The notes: generated by a model not told the origin, from the letters alone. Positions 1-59,995 are shown, counted from the whole stretch's first letter. The stretch: 63,873 nt of DNA, filler included, from Guillardia theta CCMP2712 (GCF_000315625.1; 5 parts of 5 records of this genome joined end to end with filler, not necessarily neighbours in it); one strand, 5' to 3'. Program-made: numbers and translations.

Positions 1-90
1 TCCTCCCTCCCTCCCTCCCTCCCTCCTTCCCCCTCCCCCCCCCTCCCCCTCCCCCCCATGTTCCTTCCTCCAACTAACACAATTCCTGCA

Positions 91-527
91 GCCTCTCTTT
101 CAAAACATCTATCCGACTACAAACGCACCTACAAGTATGTCGGAGAAGCGTAATCTACCCGCTCCTTCTATGTAAATTCTCTCTCAGCATACTTCACTAC
201 TTCACTTGACTGATCGCTCAGTCGCTTTCACTGTCCGAGGCTGCTGTTGATCTCCGCGATCCATTGCCACTGTAGCTCGGGGGACTATCACACGTGGGAG
301 AGGAAAGAAGCTGGTGGATGTGACATGAAGCGGGGGTTGATTGCCACCGTCGGACTTCTTCATAGGAATGACAGTGAGCAACGAAAGGAGCTCGTGGTAC
401 CTGTACTGGAGATTGCTTACCTCATCGGTCATCGTTTCAGGGAGTTAGAGTATGCCCCCTACTACCGTGAAAGCCGCCCGACGGAGCACAACAGAAGCCT
501 CGGATCGGATCTAGTATCGTCATGCCG
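91..527 (+). repeat. Tail of a preceding copy of the ~7.4-kb tandem unit (last exon ...LSDYKRTYKYVGEA* plus downstream sequence)
   Basis: About 107-300 matches about 8405-8600 and 15725-15920, and 494-527 matches 8602-8635. About 190 bp of extra sequence lies between the two blocks in this copy. Confidence 0.85.
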
Positions 528-1407
528 TCTATGTTGGATGGGATGAGCGAATTGTGCGAGGCTTTCGCGGCTCGCTGTGTGGAGAGCCTCTTGAATGCAT
601 CTTTCATGATTAATCAAGTTCATTGGCCCCCTTGTCCGTCACGGTGAAGCCTGAGACTCACAGAGGAACTCATCCAGCATTCATGACGGAACACAAGTTT
701 CAGGGCCTGTTTGTTAGGCTTGCCAGTACCGTGATCATGATGCCAAAATATATATTTCCTCAAAGTGAATTCAAAATCAGTACGAGGACAATCAGGAGAG
801 TCGAGGAGGCTTGCCCCTGACACTGTCGCAGTAGTAATGCCGCAGACAGCGTACCGCAGTCCGTCACGAGTCGACGCCGCCGGCCGGCCGGGATCACACT
901 GAGTGGCAGCGCGGCCGCGTCGAACGGTCGGGGCGGGGGCCGCCCGCCGGTCGGCGGCGGCGGGGGGGCCGGGCCGGAACTTCGAAAATGAATGGGCCTA
1001 GCTAGCAACCGTGACGCTGAGCCTCGGAGAGCCCCCGGGATCATTGTACTACCGTAAGTTTCAAAGTCAACTTGCCATTTAGCACCGGCAGACCGAACGG
1101 ACGGTCACACAGACTGCTGGGAGGACGCGATCCGCCGGAACCGCGCCGGGCCGCTTCAGCTTTCGGGCCCGTGACTTGGAGTAAACTTGACTCAGCCCTC
1201 CGGCGGGCCCGGCCGGGCCGGCCGGGCCGCCGACCGGGTGCCGCGTCACTGGGGCCCGGGCCGCGGGTTTCAACAAGCAGCTATAGAGGGGGTGTACTTT
1301 CAAATCGGACCCCTCCACGTGAAATTGAGAGCGGGCATTTCAAATAGAACCTCCAATCCTCCTGCTCCGCTCCAAATCCCCTCGAAATCAAGCGCAATTC
1401 GAGCAGC

Positions 1408-4400
1408 ATGTCAGGCAACAGATCCAAGCGAAGGCGCGATGCCGAGATGCACGAGAGCAGACCCTCAAGGCAAAGGACGCGTCAAGGACATGTCCAGGAT
1501 CTACATGCCCCACCTGAAGAGGAAGCGGCGGAGCTGAACCCATGGAATGCTCGAGGGAACGAGAGGGAGATCGCCGCGACGGAGGTAACGGAGATGAGGA
1601 AGAGACTACAAGCAGCGCGAGAAAGCCGCGATGGAGAGAAGATAGCCTTTGCAGAGATAGATTTAGCGAAGGCGAAGCTGGGAGCAGCGAACAAGGCTGG
1701 GGACGAGAGGGTGATCGCGGCAGCAAAAGTCGAGGTCGCGGAGGCGAAGCTGAGAGGGGAGGTCGAGGTCGCGGAGGCGAAACTGGGAGAAGCGAACAAG
1801 GCTGGGGACGAGAGGGTGATCGCGGCGGCGAAAGTCAAGGTCGCGGAGGCGAAGCTGAGAGGGGAGGTCGAGGTCGCGGAGGCGAAACTGGGAGAAGCGA
1901 ACAAGGCTGGGGACGAGAGGAAGATCGCGGAGGTCGAGGTCGCGGAGGCGAAGGCGAAGCTGAGAGGGGAGGTCGAGGACGAGAGGGTGATCGCGGCGGC
2001 GAAAGTCAAGGTCGCGGAGGCGAGGAAGATCGCGGCGGCGAAAGTCAAGGTCGCCGGAGGCGAAGCAGAGAGGGGAGGTCGAGGTCGCGGAGGCGAAGCT
2101 GAGAGAGGAGGTCGAGGTCGCGAAGGCGAAGCAGAGAGGGGAGGTCGAGGTCGCGGAGGCGAAGCTGGGAGCAGCGAACAAGGCTGGGGACGAGAGGAAG
2201 ATCGCGGCGGCGAAAGTCAAGGTCGCGGAGGCGAAGCAGAGAGGGGAGGTCGAGGTCGCGGAGGCGAAGCAGAGAGGGGAGGTCGAGGTCGCGGAGGCGA
2301 AGCAGAGAGGGGAGGTCGAGGTCGCGAAGGCGAAGCTGGGAGCAGCGAACAAGGCTGGGGACGAGAGGGAGATCGAGGCGGCGATAGTCGAGGTCGCGAA
2401 GGCGGAGCTGAGAGGGGAGGTCAAGGTCACGAAGGCGAAGCTGAGAGGGGAGGTCGAGGTCGCGGAGGCGAAGCTGGTTGATGCGCAAACCAAGAATCAG
2501 ACCCAGTTAGTAGATGATTTGCAGCGCTCTTTGTACCTCAATCAGTGCAAGCTTGCAGACTTTGATGCATCGTTGCCTATGCGGTTGGATACGGAAGGTA
2601 ACCTGTACTTGCTGAGATTGTGTGCTGCCGTGCGGAGGGTTGAGGTGGTTTGAAAAGGCGAAGCGCTGAATGTTTTCCTGCAGTGTTGCATGCGGTGTCT
2701 CTCAAGTATCGCATTGCGCTGGGAGAGGTCGTTGACACGCTGAAGAGACACCTAGGCGAAGTGCTGGGATCAAGAACGGGAGCATTCAGCCAAAGGAACC
2801 CCATCGACAAAGTAGTAGCAGAAGCGGGAAGAAAAGCCGGGATTGTTACTTGTATGATCGAGGCATGCTCGGGGAGCGGGAAATCGTTGAGTGCTGTAGA
2901 CTACTTCGTACGAAATCCAAAGACATCGCTTTATTGCTTGTTCGGATACATCCAGGAACAGGATTTATATCTGATTGTACGAGGCATCTCGCACATGATC
3001 AATGCAGCCATCGATCTTGATCTCCAGGCGTGTGATCGCAGGATCGATTACCTTGACCCAACAAAATGCGAGCAGGAAGTCTTGACGATCGACCTGCACG
3101 CGTACAGCTGGAACTTGCTTGGTGTTGTGGGATACCTGCTTGGCAAGACGACGGGCCCAGGAAAGGTGCGCGTGGAGGAAGCAAAGCTGTGGACAGAGAA
3201 GGAGCACCTGTGGGTGTTGGTCGATGAAGCAATCCCGAGGTATCAAGGTATGCCCTGCCGCACTAACGCCTTATGGAGGCTGTTGTTCCTCAAGAGGATG
3301 CTTCGTAATGCAGGCTTTCATTGCATCATGCTGGGTACCAACACTCTGGTGATGAATTTCAACAATGCTTTACAGCAGACGAGAAATAGCCGAGGCAAGA
3401 ACCAAGAGACTATCAAGTGCATCACCCATCGAGCTCTTCCTCCGATGATCCTTCAGTCTGATGAGCAGCGCGATATCCTGAAGCAGGTGTTTGGGGAAGA
3501 GATGATTGAGGGGTTGCTCGACAATGTCAACCCCATGCTCTGCCACCTATTCTTCAAGTATTGGAGTGGTGGACAAGGGAAAGATAGCGCGACCTTGTTT
3601 CGAGATCTAGCAAATCCACTGTTGGCCATAGTACGAGGTGACAAGAAAAGCCTCAAGGACTCATCGTTGTACTGTATGTTTCAGATAGCAACGCACGAAA
3701 GCATGTGCCAGGCGCACATCTTGCAAGGCTTTGGTGTCCTCAATGCTTGGCCGATGAGCCAAGTCCCTGCACGCGGCAGCTCGGAGTCAATCGTTGAGCT
3801 TAAACGGACCGACAATCAGATTGAGATGAATGGGATCGAACTCAACGACTTGACTAGCAAGTTCCCGCCAAGCTGGGTAGACCCCATCACCGTCGCGATC
3901 TGTGCTGGCGGGGGGAGACCTTTCGGGAACAACTCGAGCCTTGAGGTGTTGAGGAGGATCCACCGAGACGCTCTGAAGCCCATGGATGATCCAACAGCAG
4001 TAGATGCGCTGCGCCGAGACGGGAACCTGCTGGAGTCGTTTGGAGGAGTCGTGGTGATGTTGACGAGCTGGGCCGATCCTGAGGACATTCTTTCAACCCT
4101 CAGCCATCATTGCGGAAGGGAAGTGAGAGGCAAAGTGAAGGAGGTGCTTGGTTGCGTGAAGGATGAAGCATCAGCACGGGAGTTCCGCAAAGTCTTGACT
4201 CAGTGCTTCTGTAATCTGATCCCCTTGCGGGACGGTGACGATGAGATGCCTAACCATAAAGCTTTCGGGTACTACACTCGATGCAAGGACAAGCGGAGAC
4301 GGGACGGAGAGTTTGTGGGCCCCGTCCACGGTCCTGATGGCCAAAGCAGCATGAGGGGAGCAGCGGAGTTTAAGAACCGGAGAAAGCCTCTTGGTCAATC

Positions 4401-4704
4401 GCAGCTCACGAAGTTTGTGAAGAAACTAGCCAACGACAATCACAACCTCCTGTTGTTCATGGCTCCGGCGCTAGGAGAGTTCAAGGCTGAGAACATCCTA
4501 CCGACAGATGGAGATGCCACGTGGTTGGTTCTGCATTGGACGATGGACACAACGAAATACTCAGGATGGCACACTGAGGTGTTAGGCGGAAAGGCGAAGT
4601 GCAAAAGTCATAGGATACTGATCCTTATGGAGATCGGGCTGTCAACGAAACCTTTTAGTGAACCGTCGATGCAGCAAGACGAGATGGATGACGAGGACCC
4701 GTGA
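1408..4704 (+). pseudogene. Crinkler(CR)-like NTPase-nuclease gene, copy 1, frameshifted in the repeat header
   Basis: Exons 1408-2597 and 2684-4704 total 3211 nt (3n+1). An extra C near 2055 (gtcgCcggagg versus gtcgcggagg) shifts the frame; a sequencing error is possible. Exon 2 retains Walker A ACSGSGKS, Walker B WVLVDEA and RDG...AEFKN. Confidence 0.75.
2598..2683 (+). other. 86-nt GT-AG intron of CR-like gene copy 1
   Basis: GAAG|GTAACC...GCTGAATGTTTTCCTGCAG|TG, identical to the intron in copies 2 and 3. Confidence 0.85.
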
Positions 4705-4820
4705 AGATGGATGACGAGGACCCGTGAAGGTGGATGACGAGGACCCGTGAAGATGGATGACGAGGACCCGTGAAGATGGATGACGAGGACCCGTGAAGAT
4801 GGATGACGAGGACCCGTGAA
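4683..4820 (+). repeat. 23-bp tandem array (GATGGATGACGAGGACCCGTGAA) x6
   Basis: 138 bp = 6 units. The first unit encodes the C-terminal MDDEDP-stop. Confidence 0.97.
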
Positions 4821-5747
4821 GCAACCGGGAGATGATCGCTCAGAGACGCAGACCAATGAGGGATGCTGGACTCGGTAGAGGAGAACCAGAGACCGAGAAA
4901 AGATGACGAAGCGACGAAGAGGACGTGAGAGCTTTGTTTGTGCTGGTCTTGTCTCATAAGGAAGCTCGCAAGCCTGGACCATAGTAGGGTGAGAAGTCTA
5001 CTGCTTGCCGCAGCCCGGGTAAGGGCGAGGATGCCAACACGCTCTTGCCATGGTAGACTCTCAAGCAAGGCGATTGGTGGGAGCTAGAACGGCCGGGGGA
5101 GGGAGGGGTACCTTGTTGTAACTTGAATACCAGCATTAAAAGTGTGTCTACAATAAACAGCCCTCTGTTCCCAACGTGGTGTAATGTTCTCTCTCTGGCA
5201 GCCGCAGTCGAGCCGCAGTCAAGCACAATATCGTCCTGCCACGAATGTGGGATGCCTATCTCGCCATCACTTCTCGGAGCTTGCATCTTCAGGGCGCGAT
5301 AAGGGTTCAGAGACCGCCGTGGATCCAGGCGGCTTTGCTGCCCTCGGGGAAAATCACATCCCTCCGATGAGCCACCAGATGCGATGCCGAGCTGACCTGT
5401 CTCGCACCGAGTCCCATGGATCTCACTGCATCGCACGTCGCTTGCAACCACGAGAGTCCTCTTTGAGCCTGGCAAGCGCATGCCTGCTCTTGCTCCATCC
5501 CCGTCTGAAGCTTCAGGAGCGCGTGCGACATCGTCAGTGCCGCTGGAGCCAGTTCAAGTACCCACACAGGTGTGGAGCGTGTCGCTGCATCTACACACCA
5601 AGAGCCAAGATGATGCATAAGGCTCCACACACAAAGACCAGAGCAACCGCCACGCAGCGATCACGCATGCACACCTGCTTGATGTGGCGCCCTCAGCGAG
5701 GCTCACGAGTCGCCATGGCCCGCCATTGAAATATGGCTAGGGTACTG

Positions 5748-54277: not shown

Positions 54278-55084
54278 CACGTGACCGAGACAAGACTTTT
54301 TAATATAGAAGATCCAAAAACCCATAGGACATTTGTCCCAGGGAGAAGAGAACCTCCCTTGACCCCCCTGTTTCTCGACGGATCTGCCGGCTGGGCCCGT
54401 CAGTAGACCGACTGCAGCATTCAGCCCCGCCTCAGACCCCATGGAGGCCCGCCAGGAGGTTAAGTGTCAGGAGATTGGCCGGGGGCCCGATCTCTCCGGG
54501 CGGCCGTGACCGGTCAGCGGACAGTGTCAGCAGGCCCGTGACATGTCAGCCGGTTGACAGGGGCCGTGACCCGGCTGACAGGCTCACAAGACCGGTCACG
54601 TGACACATCACGTGACCGAGACAAGACTTTTTTATATCGCAGATCCAAAAACCCATAGGACATTTCTCCCAGGGGGAAGAAAACCTCCCTTGACCCCCCT
54701 GTTTCTCGACGGATCCTGCCGGCCGGGCCCGTCAGTAGACCGACTGCAGCCTTCAGCCCCGCCTCAGACCCCCTGGAGGCCCGCCAGGAGGCTAAGTGTC
54801 CGGAGATTGGCCGGGGGCCTGATCTCTCCGGGCGGCCGTGACCGGTCAGCGGACCGTGTCAGCAGGCCCGTGACATGTCAGCCGGCTGACAGGGGCCGTG
54901 ACCCGGCTGACAGGCTCACCTGACCGGTCACGTGACACATCACGTGACCGAGACAAGACTTTTTTATATCGCAGATCCAAAAACCCATAGGACATTTCTC
55001 CCAGGGGGAAGAAAACCTCCCTTGACCCCCCTGTTTCTCGACGGATCCTGCCGGCCGGGCCCGTCAGTAGACCGACTGCAGCCT
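54278..55084 (+). repeat. Left array of the 332-bp unit (one diverged, one full, one partial)
   Basis: Units start CACGTGACACATCACGTGACC at 54597 and 54929. Confidence 0.95.
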
Positions 55085-55190
55085 GAAATCGCAGCGCGAT
55101 GTGGCATGCTCGGAGACGATTGCCAAGGCCGATGCGGTAAGGGACGACATCAAGATGGTGAAGGCGAGGATCTGCGAGGCGCCGCTCTGA
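55085..55190 (+). pseudogene. 3' stub of a plus-strand gene cut by the left repeat array
   Basis: Open frame KSQRDVACSETIAKADAVRDDIKMVKARICEAPL* followed by AATAAA at 55205-55210. Confidence 0.5.
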
Positions 55191-55215
55191 GGCTTTTCAT
55201 TATAAATAAAGTGCT

Positions 55216-55992
55216 TTACACTGCGTCATCCTCGCTCATGTCGGACCCACCCATGTCGGACCATTCCTCCTCCTCGTACTCTTCCTCTCTCGGTGGCGGG
55301 GGCTGCCTATTCTGCAAGACGTTTCTGGTATGCTCTATCCTCTCTTCGATCAGGACGACGAGGACACTGTGCACGCTGTCCATGATCTTCGCCGCGATGT
55401 AAGCAAAGCTGTGGCGGCTGGGCCGTTGGAGGATGGGCTCGATCCGGCTCCAGATGGACCTCCATGCTCTTGTGAAATCATGCATGCGTCGGATGTAGTC
55501 GTCCATGCGGGTTTCCATAGTATCAGAGGCGTTGGGGTGCATGTAAATGGCCACCAACATGCTTTGCACTAGGTGCGGTGTTTCCGGGAGTGGTCGTTCA
55601 TCGCCGAGAGCGGCGCTTATCAGCCTCACGCTAGTGAACAGGCTGATGAGGTTGATGATTGCATGCATTTTGTCGGGAAAATGGCTCTGATTAAAATTGG
55701 AAACGTACTCTTCCGCGCGCCGCATGCATTGGGTATGCACGAAGCTCCACAGGCGTGTGCGGATCAGGTTCGTCATCCGCATGTTGCGCCGGATGCAAGA
55801 TAAGATGATGTGAAGCTCAAGACCAAGTATGCCAAGATTAGGTCCAATGTTTTCGTTCCACATCCTTTGTGTCACCTCGTTGTCCTGCGTGAAGCAAGCG
55901 CGCACCTGCTCTCTGAGCACGTGCGCGGGTGGTCCATGCGGGCGCCGGAATCTCCGGATGAACATGTCAACCAGCTCGTCATACGGGTCCAT
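55216..55992 (-). CDS. Unknown alpha-helical protein, paralogue A (258 aa)
   Basis: Intronless. Shares MDxY..LV, C[FL]TxD...T...WN, RLWxFV and RP..[HY]xFx[YF]I.A[KH]I with B and C. Confidence 0.85.
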   Translation of the reverse strand: MDPYDELVDMFIRRFRRPHGPPAHVLREQVRACFTQDNEVTQRMWNENIGPNLGILGLELHIILSCIRRNMRMTNLIRTRLWSFVHTQCMRRAEEYVSNFNQSHFPDKMHAIINLISLFTSVRLISAALGDERPLPETPHLVQSMLVAIYMHPNASDTMETRMDDYIRRMHDFTRAWRSIWSRIEPILQRPSRHSFAYIAAKIMDSVHSVLVVLIEERIEHTRNVLQNRQPPPPREEEYEEEEWSDMGGSDMSEDDAV

Positions 55993-55998
55993 CGAGCT

Positions 55999-56760
55999 CT
56001 AGGCGTCGCGACACGGTGAGATGCATTTATAGATGGAGTCATTGTTAGTTGTAGCCAGAATCCGAGGACGTTTCACAGTGATTTGGGTGGTAGGGTTAAT
56101 TTCTTGTGCAGTCTGAAGCCGTTGCGATATATGTTGTACGAGCATGTCCTCGGTATTTTGTATGATCTTTGCCAGGATGTAATCGAATCTGTGATTTCGG
56201 GGCCGTTGCAAGATGCGCTGTGCTTGCGAATGAATGTTCCTGAATTGTCGCAAGATGCTTTCCATGGTGGAGATGTAGGCTATCCACGAATCCGTTGTTC
56301 CTTCCGCTATATACGAAGTATATCGAGTGAAGGTTATGCGACATTGTTCCAGGCCGTCAATTATTTGTTCATCTGGCATGCATTTCACTATTTTTTGAAT
56401 GAGGAATGCAAGGTATAGGTTTGCTTTTATCATATCTGGGTCGTGGTAATGTGTCCCGTAGAAATCCTGCGTATTTTTCCTTGCTTGGCGCATCGCGTTT
56501 TTGTTCACGAAATCCCAAAGCCGTTGCTTCAGTATTGGGGTCAGCTGCAATCCATAACGCAGACCAACCGAGATCATACGCAATGCTCCCCATATGTCTG
56601 CAAGATGGTTGTTCATCAACGCGTTCCACCTATCGCGCGTCTCGTCGTCATCGACAGTGAGACAGTTGTTGATGCTCTGTCTCATTTCCTCCATGTCGAC
56701 GTTGGTTCCGCTTGCCAGCTCGCGTGCGAGTATGTCGACGAGCCTATTGTACTCGTCCAT
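55999..56760 (-). CDS. Unknown alpha-helical protein, paralogue B (start MDEYNRLV)
   Basis: Same conserved blocks as A and C. Start chosen by paralogue alignment and TATA spacing. Confidence 0.85.
   Translation of the reverse strand: MDEYNRLVDILARELASGTNVDMEEMRQSINNCLTVDDDETRDRWNALMNNHLADIWGALRMISVGLRYGLQLTPILKQRLWDFVNKNAMRQARKNTQDFYGTHYHDPDMIKANLYLAFLIQKIVKCMPDEQIIDGLEQCRITFTRYTSYIAEGTTDSWIAYISTMESILRQFRNIHSQAQRILQRPRNHRFDYILAKIIQNTEDMLVQHISQRLQTAQEINPTTQITVKRPRILATTNNDSIYKCISPCRDA
56022..56031 (-). promoter_or_regulatory. TATA box TATAAATGCA of paralogue A
   Basis: Begins 39 nt upstream of the ATG at 55992. Confidence 0.7.
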
Positions 56761-56788
56761 GCTGAGTTTGAATAAGAATCTACTAGCC

Positions 56789-56798
56789 TGCATTTATA
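56789..56798 (-). promoter_or_regulatory. TATA box TATAAATGCA of paralogue B
   Basis: Begins 38 nt upstream of the ATG at 56760. Confidence 0.7.
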
Positions 56799-56809
56799 GG
56801 AGTATGAGT

Positions 56810-57601
56810 TTAATCGGTGTCTGGCCATATCTCGTCCTCAGCGGTGATGTCATCGTCCAAGTCTGCGTATGTCCTGGAAGACCGTTTTTGCTGCCCAGGG
56901 ATATTGTCGCCCTCCCTCTCGATTTGTTCAATCGATGTAAGCGCGTCTTGCATGCTCTGGGTTGCCCATGCAAGGATCATCTGCCCGGTGCTGTCTATGA
57001 TATGTGCAACGATGAATGCAAATTTGTAGTTGCGCGGTCTGGTCATGACAAGCTTTGCACGTCGTCGAAGGATTCGGTATTCCTGTAGGATAGTTTCCAA
57101 TGCTGTGATGTGGTCTGTCCAGGCCTGTCTATTGCTTCTTTGCCTTCCACGGGGGTTGGTCTGTTGTTCTCGCTGGAACAAAAAGCGGAAGTCTTCCAGG
57201 CCAGCTACCAGCTCCTCGTCTTGAAATTCTTGCAGTAGTTGTTGGACACGTGATGCTGTGTACAGCGTTGTTTGGATGTAGAAAAGTTGGTTGGATTCTT
57301 CGAATCGCTGGATGTTCGATCTTGTTTGTTGCATCGTAAGCCTGTACACAAACTCCCATAGCCGTTTTCTCAGTAGTGGGGTCATCTGCAACCCATTATT
57401 AATACAAAACGAGATTTCCAATATCTCATAAGTGATGTTTTCATGGGCCTCGTTCAGCATTGCATTCCACATCTCCCGTGTATCGTTGTTGTCGATGGTG
57501 AGACAGTTGTTCACCCGCTGTCTCATCTCGTTCATGTCGGTGTCGTGTGCATGTACAAATGCATGTGCCAACAAATTTACGATGTTGCGATATGCATCCA
57601 T
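56810..57601 (-). CDS. Unknown alpha-helical protein, paralogue C (start MDAYRNIV)
   Basis: Same conserved blocks; acidic C-terminal tail as in A. Confidence 0.85.
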   Translation of the reverse strand: MDAYRNIVNLLAHAFVHAHDTDMNEMRQRVNNCLTIDNNDTREMWNAMLNEAHENITYEILEISFCINNGLQMTPLLRKRLWEFVYRLTMQQTRSNIQRFEESNQLFYIQTTLYTASRVQQLLQEFQDEELVAGLEDFRFLFQREQQTNPRGRQRSNRQAWTDHITALETILQEYRILRRRAKLVMTRPRNYKFAFIVAHIIDSTGQMILAWATQSMQDALTSIEQIEREGDNIPGQQKRSSRTYADLDDDITAEDEIWPDTD

Positions 57602-57630
57602 GTTGGGTTTGAATGCATAGACACCGCGCA

Positions 57631-57640
57631 TGCATTAATA
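57631..57640 (-). promoter_or_regulatory. TATA-like box TATTAATGCA of paralogue C
   Basis: Begins 39 nt upstream of the ATG at 57601. Confidence 0.65.
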
Positions 57641-57837
57641 CGATGAGAATCAATGACAACGATCAGGTTAATGTTCAATGATCATGACAATGGTCAGGAC
57701 AATGATCAATATGCTGAACAATGGTCATGTCAACGAATGACATGACTGTCAATGGACGAGGCAATAAACAGTGTTTGAAGCAATAGTCAATACAATGGTC
57801 AATGATAACGGTAATATTCAATGAGCAAAACAATGAA

Positions 57838-58503
57838 TCATCCGGTAAGAGGGACGGCCGGGAATTCCTGCTCCTCTTGCATGCTGCTTGTGAGTTTTGG
57901 CATCTCGGTGACCCTGCTCGGCCTCTCCCGGATGAGAAAGTTGTGCCCCTCCTTCTCGTCGATCCCTAGGATCTCGTCGAGCTCATCCTGCAGCTCGGTG
58001 TCGTCGATATCCTCATCCCTCACCATGCGTGAGGACATCATGTCGGTCACCTCCTTGATGTCCAGCTGTGTGTCCTCTAGATCTGCCATGACCGCGTCGA
58101 TGTCATCCACCTGCTTGTGCAGCCCAAGGCTCTTCATGGCGTTTGCCGTCTGCTTGACTGTAGAGATGAGGCTCTGATCCAGTTCATTGTTGTTGAGCAG
58201 GTCGAGGTGGTGCTCGAAGGACTCCTTCTTCTTCACAATCTGCGTCAGCTTGATGCGCTTCTGCTTGGACTTGATGAGGAGGGGTTTCAGCGCCTTGGCG
58301 CCCAGGTTCCGCTTTAGTTTGATCTGCTGCGTGATCTCTGTGAGCTCCTTGTTGAGTGCACATTCTTGCGTCTGGAGTTGCTCGATGCTAGTGATCAGGC
58401 TGTTGACGGCGTGTGCCGTGAGCGCCTCCTTGTCATCGTATAGTTTGGTGCAGCGCAGTGTCCCAACCCACACGCTGGCAATCGCCCGCATGCAGCCCGA
58501 CAT
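57838..58503 (-). CDS. Divergent ESCRT-III (Snf7/CHMP family) protein, intronless, 221 aa
   Basis: Basic N-half (KALKPLLIKSKQKR) and acidic C-half: STVKQTANAMKSL...VDDIDAVMADLED...EVTDMMS...DIDDTELQDELDEI. MIM2-like FPAVP at the C-terminus. Confidence 0.8.
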   Translation of the reverse strand: MSGCMRAIASVWVGTLRCTKLYDDKEALTAHAVNSLITSIEQLQTQECALNKELTEITQQIKLKRNLGAKALKPLLIKSKQKRIKLTQIVKKKESFEHHLDLLNNNELDQSLISTVKQTANAMKSLGLHKQVDDIDAVMADLEDTQLDIKEVTDMMSSRMVRDEDIDDTELQDELDEILGIDEKEGHNFLIRERPSRVTEMPKLTSSMQEEQEFPAVPLTG

Positions 58504-58534
58504 GGGGTATTGCCACCAGGGTTGGATTCTTCCC

Positions 58535-58543
58535 TATATAAAT
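58535..58543. promoter_or_regulatory. Bidirectional TATA element (TATATAAAT) between the Snf7-like gene and the divergent ORF
   Basis: About 37-39 nt from ATG 58503(-) and about 41 nt from ATG 58578(+). Confidence 0.6.
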
Positions 58544-58577
58544 CGATGGATATCCGTGGATGAAACACTCGCGGGGC

Positions 58578-59204
58578 ATGTCCGCTGCTGTCACGATCAG
58601 CTCTTCCCCGGCGGAGCTGCGGCGCCAATGGCACCATGCCGAGGTGACGTGGAAGAAGCACGTCCAAACCGAGGGTCTCTTCACCAACGGTGGAATGCCG
58701 TCGCAGTTTGGCAACAAGCTGTGCAACGATGTGCTCGCACCCTCCAAGATCCCGAGCCTGCACGAGCTCGTGGTGGAGGAGCCGTATGCTTCGTACGGGG
58801 TTTGCATCAAGGAGAGCGGCGACAGGCAGACGTCCCTGAGGGTTGCCGGCAGGACCTCCTCGAAGCTGAAGCCCAACTCCTTCGTGTCGAGCTCTTTGCT
58901 CGACCAGGACTCTTTCGAGATCATGGGGGACTATGGGGATCTCGCCAAGGCCTGGCGCTTTGCATGCAAGAGCATCCAGACCCAGAATCCCGTGGTGAAT
59001 GTCAGCCTGCCGTTCTGCTGCGAGAGGGTGGTGACGATCGGCAACACCACCGACTTCCACAACGTGCAGCACCACAAGGGCGCCTGGACCATCATCGAGG
59101 GCTGCGACCAGGGCTCGCAGGATCCGTCGAGAAACAGGGGGGTCAAGGGAGGTTTTCTTCCCCCTGGGAGAAATGTCCTATGGGTTTTTGGATCTGCGAT
59201 ATAA
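58578..59204 (+). CDS. Hypothetical protein truncated by the right repeat array
   Basis: Coding-like MSAAVTISS...WTIIEGCDQGS runs into the repeat at 59117 and stops inside it. Confidence 0.55.
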   Translation: MSAAVTISSSPAELRRQWHHAEVTWKKHVQTEGLFTNGGMPSQFGNKLCNDVLAPSKIPSLHELVVEEPYASYGVCIKESGDRQTSLRVAGRTSSKLKPNSFVSSSLLDQDSFEIMGDYGDLAKAWRFACKSIQTQNPVVNVSLPFCCERVVTIGNTTDFHNVQHHKGAWTIIEGCDQGSQDPSRNRGVKGGFLPPGRNVLWVFGSAI

Positions 59205-59903
59205 AAAAGTCTTGTCTCGGTCACGTGATGTGTCACGTGACCGGTCAGGTGAGCCTGTGAGCCGGGTCACGGCCCCTGTCAGCCGGCTGACATGTCACGG
59301 GCCTGCTGACACGGTCCGCTGACCGGTCACGGCCGCCCGGAGAGATCAGGCCCCCGGCCAATCTCCGGACACTTAGCCTCCTGGCGGGCCTCCAGGGGGT
59401 CTGAGGCGGGGCTGAAGGCTGCAGTCGGTCTACTGACGGGCCCGGCCGGCAGGATCCGTCGAGAAACAGGGGGGTCAAGGGAGGTTTTCTTCCCCCTGGG
59501 AGAAATGTCCTATGGGTTTTTGGATCTGCGATATAAAAAAGTCTTGTCTCGGTCACGTGATGTGTCACGTGACCGGTCAGGTGAGCCTGTCAGCCGGGTC
59601 ACGGACCCTGTCAGCCGGCTGACATGTCACGGGCCTGCTGACACGGTCCGCTGACCGGTCACGGCCGCCCGGAGAGATCAGGCCCCCGGCCAATCTCCGG
59701 ACACTTAGCCTCCTGGCGGGCCTCCAGGGGGTCTGAGGCGGGGCTGAAGGCTGCAGTCGGTCTACTGACGGGCCCGGCCGGCAGGATCCGTCGAGAAACA
59801 GGGGGGTCAAGGGAGGTTTTCTTCCCCCTGGGAGAAATGTCCTATGGGTTTTTGGATCTGCGATATAAAAAAGTCTTGTCTCGGTCACGTGATGTGTCAC
59901 GTG
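59117..59903 (-). repeat. Right array of the 332-bp unit (one partial, two full), inverted
   Basis: Unit ends at 59239, 59571 and 59903. Confidence 0.95.
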
Positions 59904-59995
59904 AGTTTATGCTAGCTCAGTGAGATGAGTTAGGAGGTCTTCGGCTCAGCTACCCCGGTTTTTGCTCTCTTACTGGGGTAGTGAGACAGGGATAA

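Follow-up and report, generated by a model that had tools for sequence, protein, structure and literature searches.

Positions 54,278 to 59,903 of a 63,873-nucleotide stretch of DNA from the cryptophyte Guillardia theta CCMP2712 (the whole stretch, five parts of the genome joined with filler, is referred to here as the window) hold a cassette in which a short run of tightly packed open reading frames (ORFs) is enclosed by two inverted arrays of a 332-nt repeat. This arrangement raises the question of whether the cassette is a mobile element, a virus bounded by its own repeats or a piece of viral DNA lodged among repeats of the host. An earlier reading made from the sequence alone (the sequence-only reading) had proposed either a non-autonomous element that captured a slice of a large DNA virus genome, or an internally deleted endogenous virus or giant transposon whose termini or origins are these repeats. 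We favour, with moderate confidence, the interpretation that the cargo of the cassette derives from a mirusvirus-like genome and persists as an endogenous, non-replicating fragment in the nuclear DNA of G. theta, and that the arms are resident repeats of the host. The piece of the window that carries the cassette (54278-59995) corresponds, by an exact look-up of its Snf7 protein, to bases 1-5718 of scaffold JH993231.1 (53,754 nt; assembly GCA_000315625.1) and is, over its whole length, a single gap-free sequence contig. A literature search found no published description of the cassette or of the 332-nt repeat, and nothing relevant on repeat families of G. theta.

The left arm (54278..55084, plus strand, 807 nt) is made of a part-unit at the contig end, a full unit and a 157-nt part-unit next to the cargo, and the right arm (59117..59904, minus strand, 788 nt) of a 124-nt part-unit next to the cargo followed by two full units, all in inverted orientation. 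Tandem Repeats Finder assigned a period of 332 and 2.4 copies to each arm, with 96% matches in the left and 99% in the right. The arms are complementary to each other at 98% over 673 nt in the symmetric register and at 100% over 489 nt in a register that is one unit off, a similarity between inverted arrays that is far beyond chance; inverted arms of about 0.8 kb, at the coordinates given in the sequence-only reading, are thus borne out. Among the six units or part-units, five are alike to within 0-2 positions; the exception is the outermost one on the left, at the contig end, with 17-18 differences in 319 positions. Since the left arm is cut by the end of scaffold JH993231.1, 807 nt is the length present there. 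The cargo between the arms measures 4,032 nt, of which approximately 90% is coding, with gaps of 6, 25, 46, 56-74 and 236 nt between ORFs, in agreement with the roughly 4 kb of closely spaced ORFs noted before; the G+C content is 61-63% in the arms against 41-60% in the cargo.

Read from left to right, the cargo comprises the 3' end of a gene that we call X (plus strand), three paralogous genes A, B and C (minus strand), an AT-rich spacer, a gene of the Snf7/ESCRT-III family (minus strand) and the 5' part of a gene E (plus strand). What remains of X (55086..55190) includes its stop codon, with an AATAAA signal 15 nt beyond it, and corresponds to the C terminus of a protein that is at least 274-280 amino acids long (94% identity at the related locus L014 and 74% at L007; related loci are cited by number); the 5' part of the gene has been replaced by the left arm. 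E (58560..59116, starting at 58560 or 58578) is 50-58% identical to the first half of proteins of 338-358 amino acids (L001, L002, L003 and L006), and its 3' part has been replaced by the right arm. Comparison with relatives therefore confirms that the ORFs at both edges are cut by the arms: each of these two genes is broken once, by arm truncation, and the other four contain neither stops nor frameshifts. No Pfam or PDB match was obtained for X, E could be assigned to no family or fold by Pfam or by a profile search of the PDB and had no relatives in IMG/VR, and an AlphaFold model of E, with a pLDDT of 30, was not used. The Snf7 gene (57838..58503, 221 amino acids, TATA-like box 38 nt before the ATG) is intact, and its product matches PF03357 over residues 33-181 (E = 6.7e-12, 45.8 bits, gathering cut-off 27.3); its sole PDB match is yeast Snf7 (E = 0.005), with which an acidic C-terminal stretch aligns. 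E and the Snf7 gene are divergent and share a promoter stretch of 56-74 nt with a TATA box.

The order of these genes is shared with virus-like loci elsewhere. A word search retrieved ten relatives of the Snf7 protein at 54-69% identity, all of them in dense contexts of small ORFs without Pfam domains, and in L001, L002, L003 and L006/L009 the Snf7 gene stands head to head with a gene for a 338-358-aa protein of the E type. Closest to the window are L007 and L014, short contigs that both come from a single Logan sample. In the former, a Snf7 gene (86% identity across the portion that is present) is followed by a single homolog of paralog C (58%) and then by a convergent X, of which the last 34 residues match the remnant in the window, and the latter contains two tandem paralogs followed by X (94% over the remnant). 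The presence of tandem paralogs in L014 indicates that the paralog array belongs to the virus lineage and not to a host locus. The cargo is of viral origin and colinear with these relatives, which supports the earlier proposal of a slice of a large DNA virus genome, and it is an unbroken stretch in native gene order. A Pfam search of 36 ORFs of the relatives returned a P-loop kinase-like AAA_18 match and weak protease matches only, and the profile of a 781-aa protein of the larger G. theta regions had no match in the PDB. We also considered a family of small repeat-ended elements, to which several related metagenome contigs of about 5.6 kb might have belonged, and rejected it on finding no terminal or tandem repeats in them.

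Probably the virus from which the cargo derives was mirusvirus-like, that is, a herpes-related algal virus, and not a nucleocytoplasmic large DNA virus (NCLDV) or a Polinton. In a 2025 survey of 1,202 mirusvirus genomes, Snf7 was present in most mirusviruses and was not found in nucleocytoviruses (PMC12768974). Furthermore, high-quality mirusvirus capsid genes, placed in clade E03 together with those of two other cryptophytes, are listed for GCA_000315625.1 (PMC10827195); Table 1 of that study names the assembly and not its scaffolds, and the capsid genes presumably belong with the loci described here. Three orthologous proteins of relatives, encoded 4-5 genes from the Snf7/E pair, gave sub-threshold matches to a prohead serine protease, all to the same part of the profile (Pfam S78, E = 0.003, 0.00095 and 0.007; PHROG 4523, 'major head and protease', E = 0.0016), and a profile of this protease-like protein had no match in the PDB. 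No NCLDV core gene (jelly-roll capsid, A32 ATPase, PolB, VLTF3 and others) or Polinton hallmark (protein-primed PolB, rve integrase or other recombinase, jelly-roll capsid pair) was matched by Pfam in the window or in the 36 ORFs of the relatives, and Pfam likewise detected in the window no part of an HK97-type virion module (major capsid, portal, triplex, protease, terminase). Of the three viral groups with which the sequence-only reading had wanted the ORFs compared, Mirusviricota therefore stands, and the hallmarks of Nucleocytoviricota and Polintons are absent. Its observation that the cassette contains no transposase, integrase or capsid gene also held, Snf7 being the only Pfam family above threshold in the cargo. 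With a core accessory gene (Snf7), capsid genes listed for the assembly and a gene order common to independent contigs, membership of Mirusviricota is claimed for the source virus and not for a complete element.

The cassette resembles the endogenous mirusviruses in being viral DNA within a protist nuclear assembly, in a species listed among their hosts, and in having genes that are mostly orphans (PMC10827195). It differs from them in being a 4-kb slice without a virion gene and in having viral genes cut directly by inverted arrays, and no rDNA or telomere repeats were seen at it. In Aurantiochytrium, long-unit tandem repeats of the host stand in two sets on either side of an integrated mirusvirus, an arrangement that its authors ascribed to subtelomeric recombination (10.1101/2023.06.15.545109); the host repeats of that integrant, LE-Chr15, have units of 366-529 nt in 1.8-22.6 copies, compared with 332 nt and 2.4 copies here.

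Whether the arms belong to the virus or to the host can be judged from other viral DNA in the same genome. G. theta also contains larger related virus-like regions, on scaffolds that measure 176, 191 and 244 kb. A comparison of 9 kb between two of these regions (L009 4747-13783 against L010 4747-13784) gave 99% identity, and their proteins are in the same 90% clusters; proteins of the large regions also fall in 90% clusters with metagenome proteins. The regions are 80-85% identical at the DNA level to, and colinear with, L003 (GCA_036681025.1, JAXDEL010877623.1), which comes either from a close virus or from an endogenous copy in some related organism. The Snf7 and E proteins of the large regions are only 54% and 50% identical to those of the window, and hence two lineages of this virus group have left DNA in G. 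theta. The second lineage also occurs on scaffold JH993564.1 (3,074 nt), which consists of at least 3.2 units of the 332-nt array, 717 N and a viral fragment of 1.3 kb (L016 1790-3074) that is 95.7% identical to the large regions. The array of JH993564.1 is 99% identical to the arm of the window, from which it is distinguished by one internal duplication of 83 nt and one short deletion, and its presence establishes that the arms belong to a recurring repeat family.

The sequence-only reading had regarded the repeats as possible termini or origins of the virus, and in that case the arrays would be viral repeats, either terminal or dispersed as origins or enhancers, and the contig a rearranged or deleted viral genome, integrated or present in the culture. 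In keeping with this, the 332-nt unit is rich in palindromes, several of which are built on one 8-nt palindromic core, and folds on itself more stably than its shuffles (z = -4.2); all three arrays seen adjoin viral DNA (arrays were located only on loci reached through viral proteins), and the related regions possess a repeat-flanked AT-rich palindromic stretch of their own. However, no trace of the 332-nt unit was detected in related loci L001-L004, L006, L007 and L009-L015, and arrays of this type are absent from approximately 90 kb of related viral sequence, including a continuous related region of 28 kb in G. theta and environmental relatives of 16-21 kb. In addition, the two genes that the arrays truncate are intact in all relatives. 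Arrays that are 99% identical lie beside lineages that differ in about half of their protein residues, which is not what vertical viral inheritance predicts. We consider viral repeats improbable for these reasons, and the proposal of viral termini or origins fails on the same two grounds that lead us to regard the arms as host-resident: near-identical arrays stand beside two lineages of about 50% identity, and all related viral contigs seen lack them. The 332-nt family is accordingly a long-unit tandem repeat of the G. theta genome that, as judged from the units compared, is near-uniform between loci.

The only long ORF of each unit, of 107 amino acids, has no protein relatives, from which we conclude that it is non-coding. 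A 22-nt query from the unit matched one IMG/VR contig (L008), which was rejected as a chance match of 24 nt to the palindromic core in a contig of 65% G+C with no array, and two other pieces of the unit had no match in IMG/VR or in JGI metagenomes.

The strongest competitor, and the first proposal of the sequence-only reading, is a discrete, non-autonomous transposable element of the foldback type, bounded by the arrays as its terminal inverted repeats and carrying the viral slice as cargo that it had captured; it would be one copy of a family whose cargos differ. The foldback transposons Galileo and Tetris (PMC4079207, PMC3573991), and also FB of Drosophila, likewise have long inverted arms of tandem units, no transposase inside, a variable middle and units that also occur as separate arrays; arms of this construction are the hallmark of the class, with units of about 220 bp in Tetris (PMC4079207) and similar ones in Galileo. 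Long inverted repeats of tandem units are present here too, the left one incomplete. The two arms are nearly identical, the right one ends cleanly at a palindrome beside unique DNA (its outer end is the exact end of a hairpin formed by two of the 8-nt palindromic cores), the contig end on the left lies merely 13 nt short of the symmetric position, and a 332-nt array also lies beside a different viral fragment. The cassette nevertheless departs from the known foldback elements in having no sequence similarity to them, a cryptophyte host, a viral middle and, at its ends, no unique domain that stands apart from the units. The left end, with any symmetric terminus or target-site duplication, lies beyond the scaffold end. 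For copies with the same termini there is one further array, that of JH993564.1, and it continues through the position at which the right arm of the window ends, so that this position is not a universal terminus. Moreover, the inner ends of the arms, read towards the cargo, lie at unit columns 157 (left) and 124 (right), 33 nt apart, and no transposase was seen (none in the window by Pfam; an autonomous partner elsewhere was not searched for). We judge such an element unlikely, while leaving it more room than the viral repeats. A Helitron reading of the terminal hairpin was also considered and set aside, Helitron end motifs being absent as judged by eye.

Two kinds of small virus-associated element were compared as well. 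Transpovirons, which are mentioned in PMC3671162, are linear DNAs of about 7 kb with terminal inverted repeats that accompany giant viruses. The cassette is similarly small, with inverted ends, few and orphan genes and an association with a large DNA virus; unlike them, it has truncated edge genes, arms that are host-resident arrays and no helicase or other transpoviron gene by Pfam, and its virus is mirus-like and not a mimivirus. Polinton-like viruses of cryptophytes, including G. theta, are also integrated and have terminal inverted repeats of hundreds of bp (PMC12220804). In contrast to these, the cassette contains no protein-primed polymerase, integrase, jelly-roll capsid or packaging ATPase according to Pfam, measures 5.6 kb and not 14-40 kb, and has arms that are tandem arrays.

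The scaffold context bears on whether the structure is real. Beyond the right arm lie 91 nt of unique sequence (59905..59995) that is not recognisably viral, followed by a gap of at least 8,508 N, so that the contig is tied to the genes of JH993231.1 by scaffolding alone. Satellite reads could have been misattached on either side of a viral contig of 4 kb in this Sanger assembly of 2012: the contig stands at a scaffold end with a large gap adjacent, the similarity of the arms could reflect the pooled consensus of many copies, and no independent assembly with these exact proteins is on record. Yet repeat and viral DNA meet in a unique sequence at each junction, which single reads of Sanger length would span. 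It is unlikely that the same repeat would be falsely joined twice, independently, with opposite orientations and in near-equal phase, and an independent scaffold ties the same array to viral DNA. An assembly artefact of this kind accordingly has little to recommend it, and we hold it to be as improbable as viral repeats.

We therefore return to a mirusvirus-like fragment between host-resident arms. On this interpretation, viral DNA fragments would have been joined to recombination-prone 332-nt arrays, and in the case of the window an inverted, foldback-like pair of arrays probably existed first and took up the fragment at or near its centre. Central capture in such a pair would leave both arms ending within 33 nt of the same point of the unit, as they do. 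The fragment would then probably reside in a chromosome and would appear not to be mobile. Several points weigh against this interpretation. No capsid, portal or terminase was identified in the window or in the approximately 90 kb of relatives, and the assignment to mirusviruses draws on a marker gene, the literature and the weak protease matches. A near-equal phase of the inner ends is expected by chance about once in five and is thus weak evidence. The structure would also fit a larger viral region into which a repeat-bearing element inserted twice, in nested fashion, in which case the missing parts of X and E would sit beyond the arms. A gap separates this contig from the remainder of its scaffold, and 717 N likewise part the array from the viral fragment in JH993564.1, so that exact adjacency and chromosomal context are unproven. 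Finally, only virus-bearing scaffolds were viewed, and the association of arrays with viral DNA is to be read as one that lacks a whole-genome baseline.

The remaining contents of the cargo are three old tandem paralogs with mutual identities of 21-36%, all intact and on the minus strand: A (55216..55992, 258 amino acids, TATA-like box 39 nt before the ATG), B (55999..56763, 254 amino acids, TATA-like box 35 nt before the ATG) and C (56810..57601, 263 amino acids). The start of B was chosen by alignment with relatives, an in-frame upstream ATG at 56793 being possible, as is one at 57631 for C. Public annotation fuses B and A into a 467-aa model by means of a predicted intron (L005 11744-13288, equivalent to 55216-56763 of the window); we treat them as two genes because each has its own ATG and its own TATA box and because the relatives are separate proteins of 238-251 amino acids. 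When a profile of A, B, C and one known relative was run against 1.84 billion cluster representatives, five proteins were found, namely the fused model of the window and four from two environmental samples. A confident AlphaFold model of C built from a seven-sequence alignment (mean pLDDT 86, pTM 0.79) is all-alpha, with ten helices and a disordered acidic tail, and Foldseek returned no match to it at E <= 0.001 in the PDB or BFVD. Between the window and L014 the paralogs are 23-46% identical, so that orthology is blurred, whereas X and Snf7 stay at 86-94%. The paralog family thus evolves rapidly, and its pattern of divergence fits that of a putative host-interaction gene family.

Every complete gene of the cargo has a TATA-like box 35-43 nt before its ATG, in a common ten-base form in A and B, and the promoters are of a compact, nuclear type in front of genes without introns. 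Eukaryotic-type TATA boxes, one AATAAA signal and the existence of public gene models are what could be expected if the ORFs were ordinary host genes, and we regard that explanation as the least probable. The genes are intronless in a slice that is mostly coding, and their orphan family has only the five representatives mentioned above. Although the Snf7 protein has the Pfam domain of cellular Snf7/ESCRT-III, it is very divergent and far from them, as its best PDB match attests, and its nearest relatives are all in virus-like arrays; indeed, every relative of the cargo has a dense array of orphan ORFs around it, both in metagenomes and in the multi-copy regions of G. theta. The AT-rich spacer of 236 nt that follows Snf7 contains nine copies of a 9-nt motif, all on the plus strand (57657..57827), against 3.9 expected by shuffling in the whole window, and the equivalent spacer of L007 (371-515) contains ten against 1.4 expected. 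This cluster resembles a conserved viral array of binding sites, putatively. No tRNA genes or Rfam families were detected in the piece, and a scan of it for bacterial promoters and terminators was set aside as uninformative for a eukaryotic locus.

Some further features of the related regions may be recorded. A TA-rich stretch of approximately 300 nt is common to the larger ones (L015 2073-2392, L003 8088-8367, L009 4400-4684 and L010 4600-4694), where it is bracketed by 3-4 copies of an 8-nt repeat on one side and by its reverse complement on the other. It resembles a replication origin or other cis element, and the slice in the window is without it. A gene with a DcpS_C domain (scavenger decapping/HIT-like), assigned from precomputed contig annotations, is present in L015 (17802-18512; a metagenome contig of 23.5 kb) and in L010 (20250-20387; G. 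theta), and its location in a dense viral array, with a matching place in G. theta, makes it seem a viral gene and not a host border. The second viral lineage has at least three copies in G. theta, which points to segmental duplication or repeated integration. A different tandem array, with a unit of 171 nt in 3.6 copies and no similarity to the 332-nt unit, was seen in L009 (15466-16074; JH993102.1), in a stretch that is unshared with JH993078.1 and about 1.7 kb past the end of homology (near L009 13783). The marine ENA sample ERZ930071 yielded both L001, a locus of the window-type lineage whose Snf7 is 69% identical, and L011, one of whose proteins shows 100% identity to a protein of the large G. 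theta regions. The combination suggests the presence there of both lineages or of Guillardia itself.

As mirusvirus-derived DNA in the genome of a protist already flagged for it, the cargo adds a new example to a known kind, and the cassette as a whole is a real, slightly unusual viral fossil. There is an outside chance, slightly below that given to the discrete foldback element, that its arms are those of an undescribed cryptophyte foldback-like element or recombination module that repeatedly brackets mirusvirus slices; if this is true, an intact viral ESCRT-III gene and an orphan gene family have been kept, and perhaps moved or expressed, in a host genome. Mirusviruses are abundant in the ocean and little is known of their integration, the Aurantiochytrium integrant being the one that is well described. 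A second, unrelated host in which two lineages lie beside one repeat family would suggest that such arrays are preferred points of entry or breakage. The viral ESCRT-III gene and the three members of the orphan family are, finally, candidates for genes by which mirusviruses of cryptophytes interact with their hosts, and they are found in a model alga that can be cultured.

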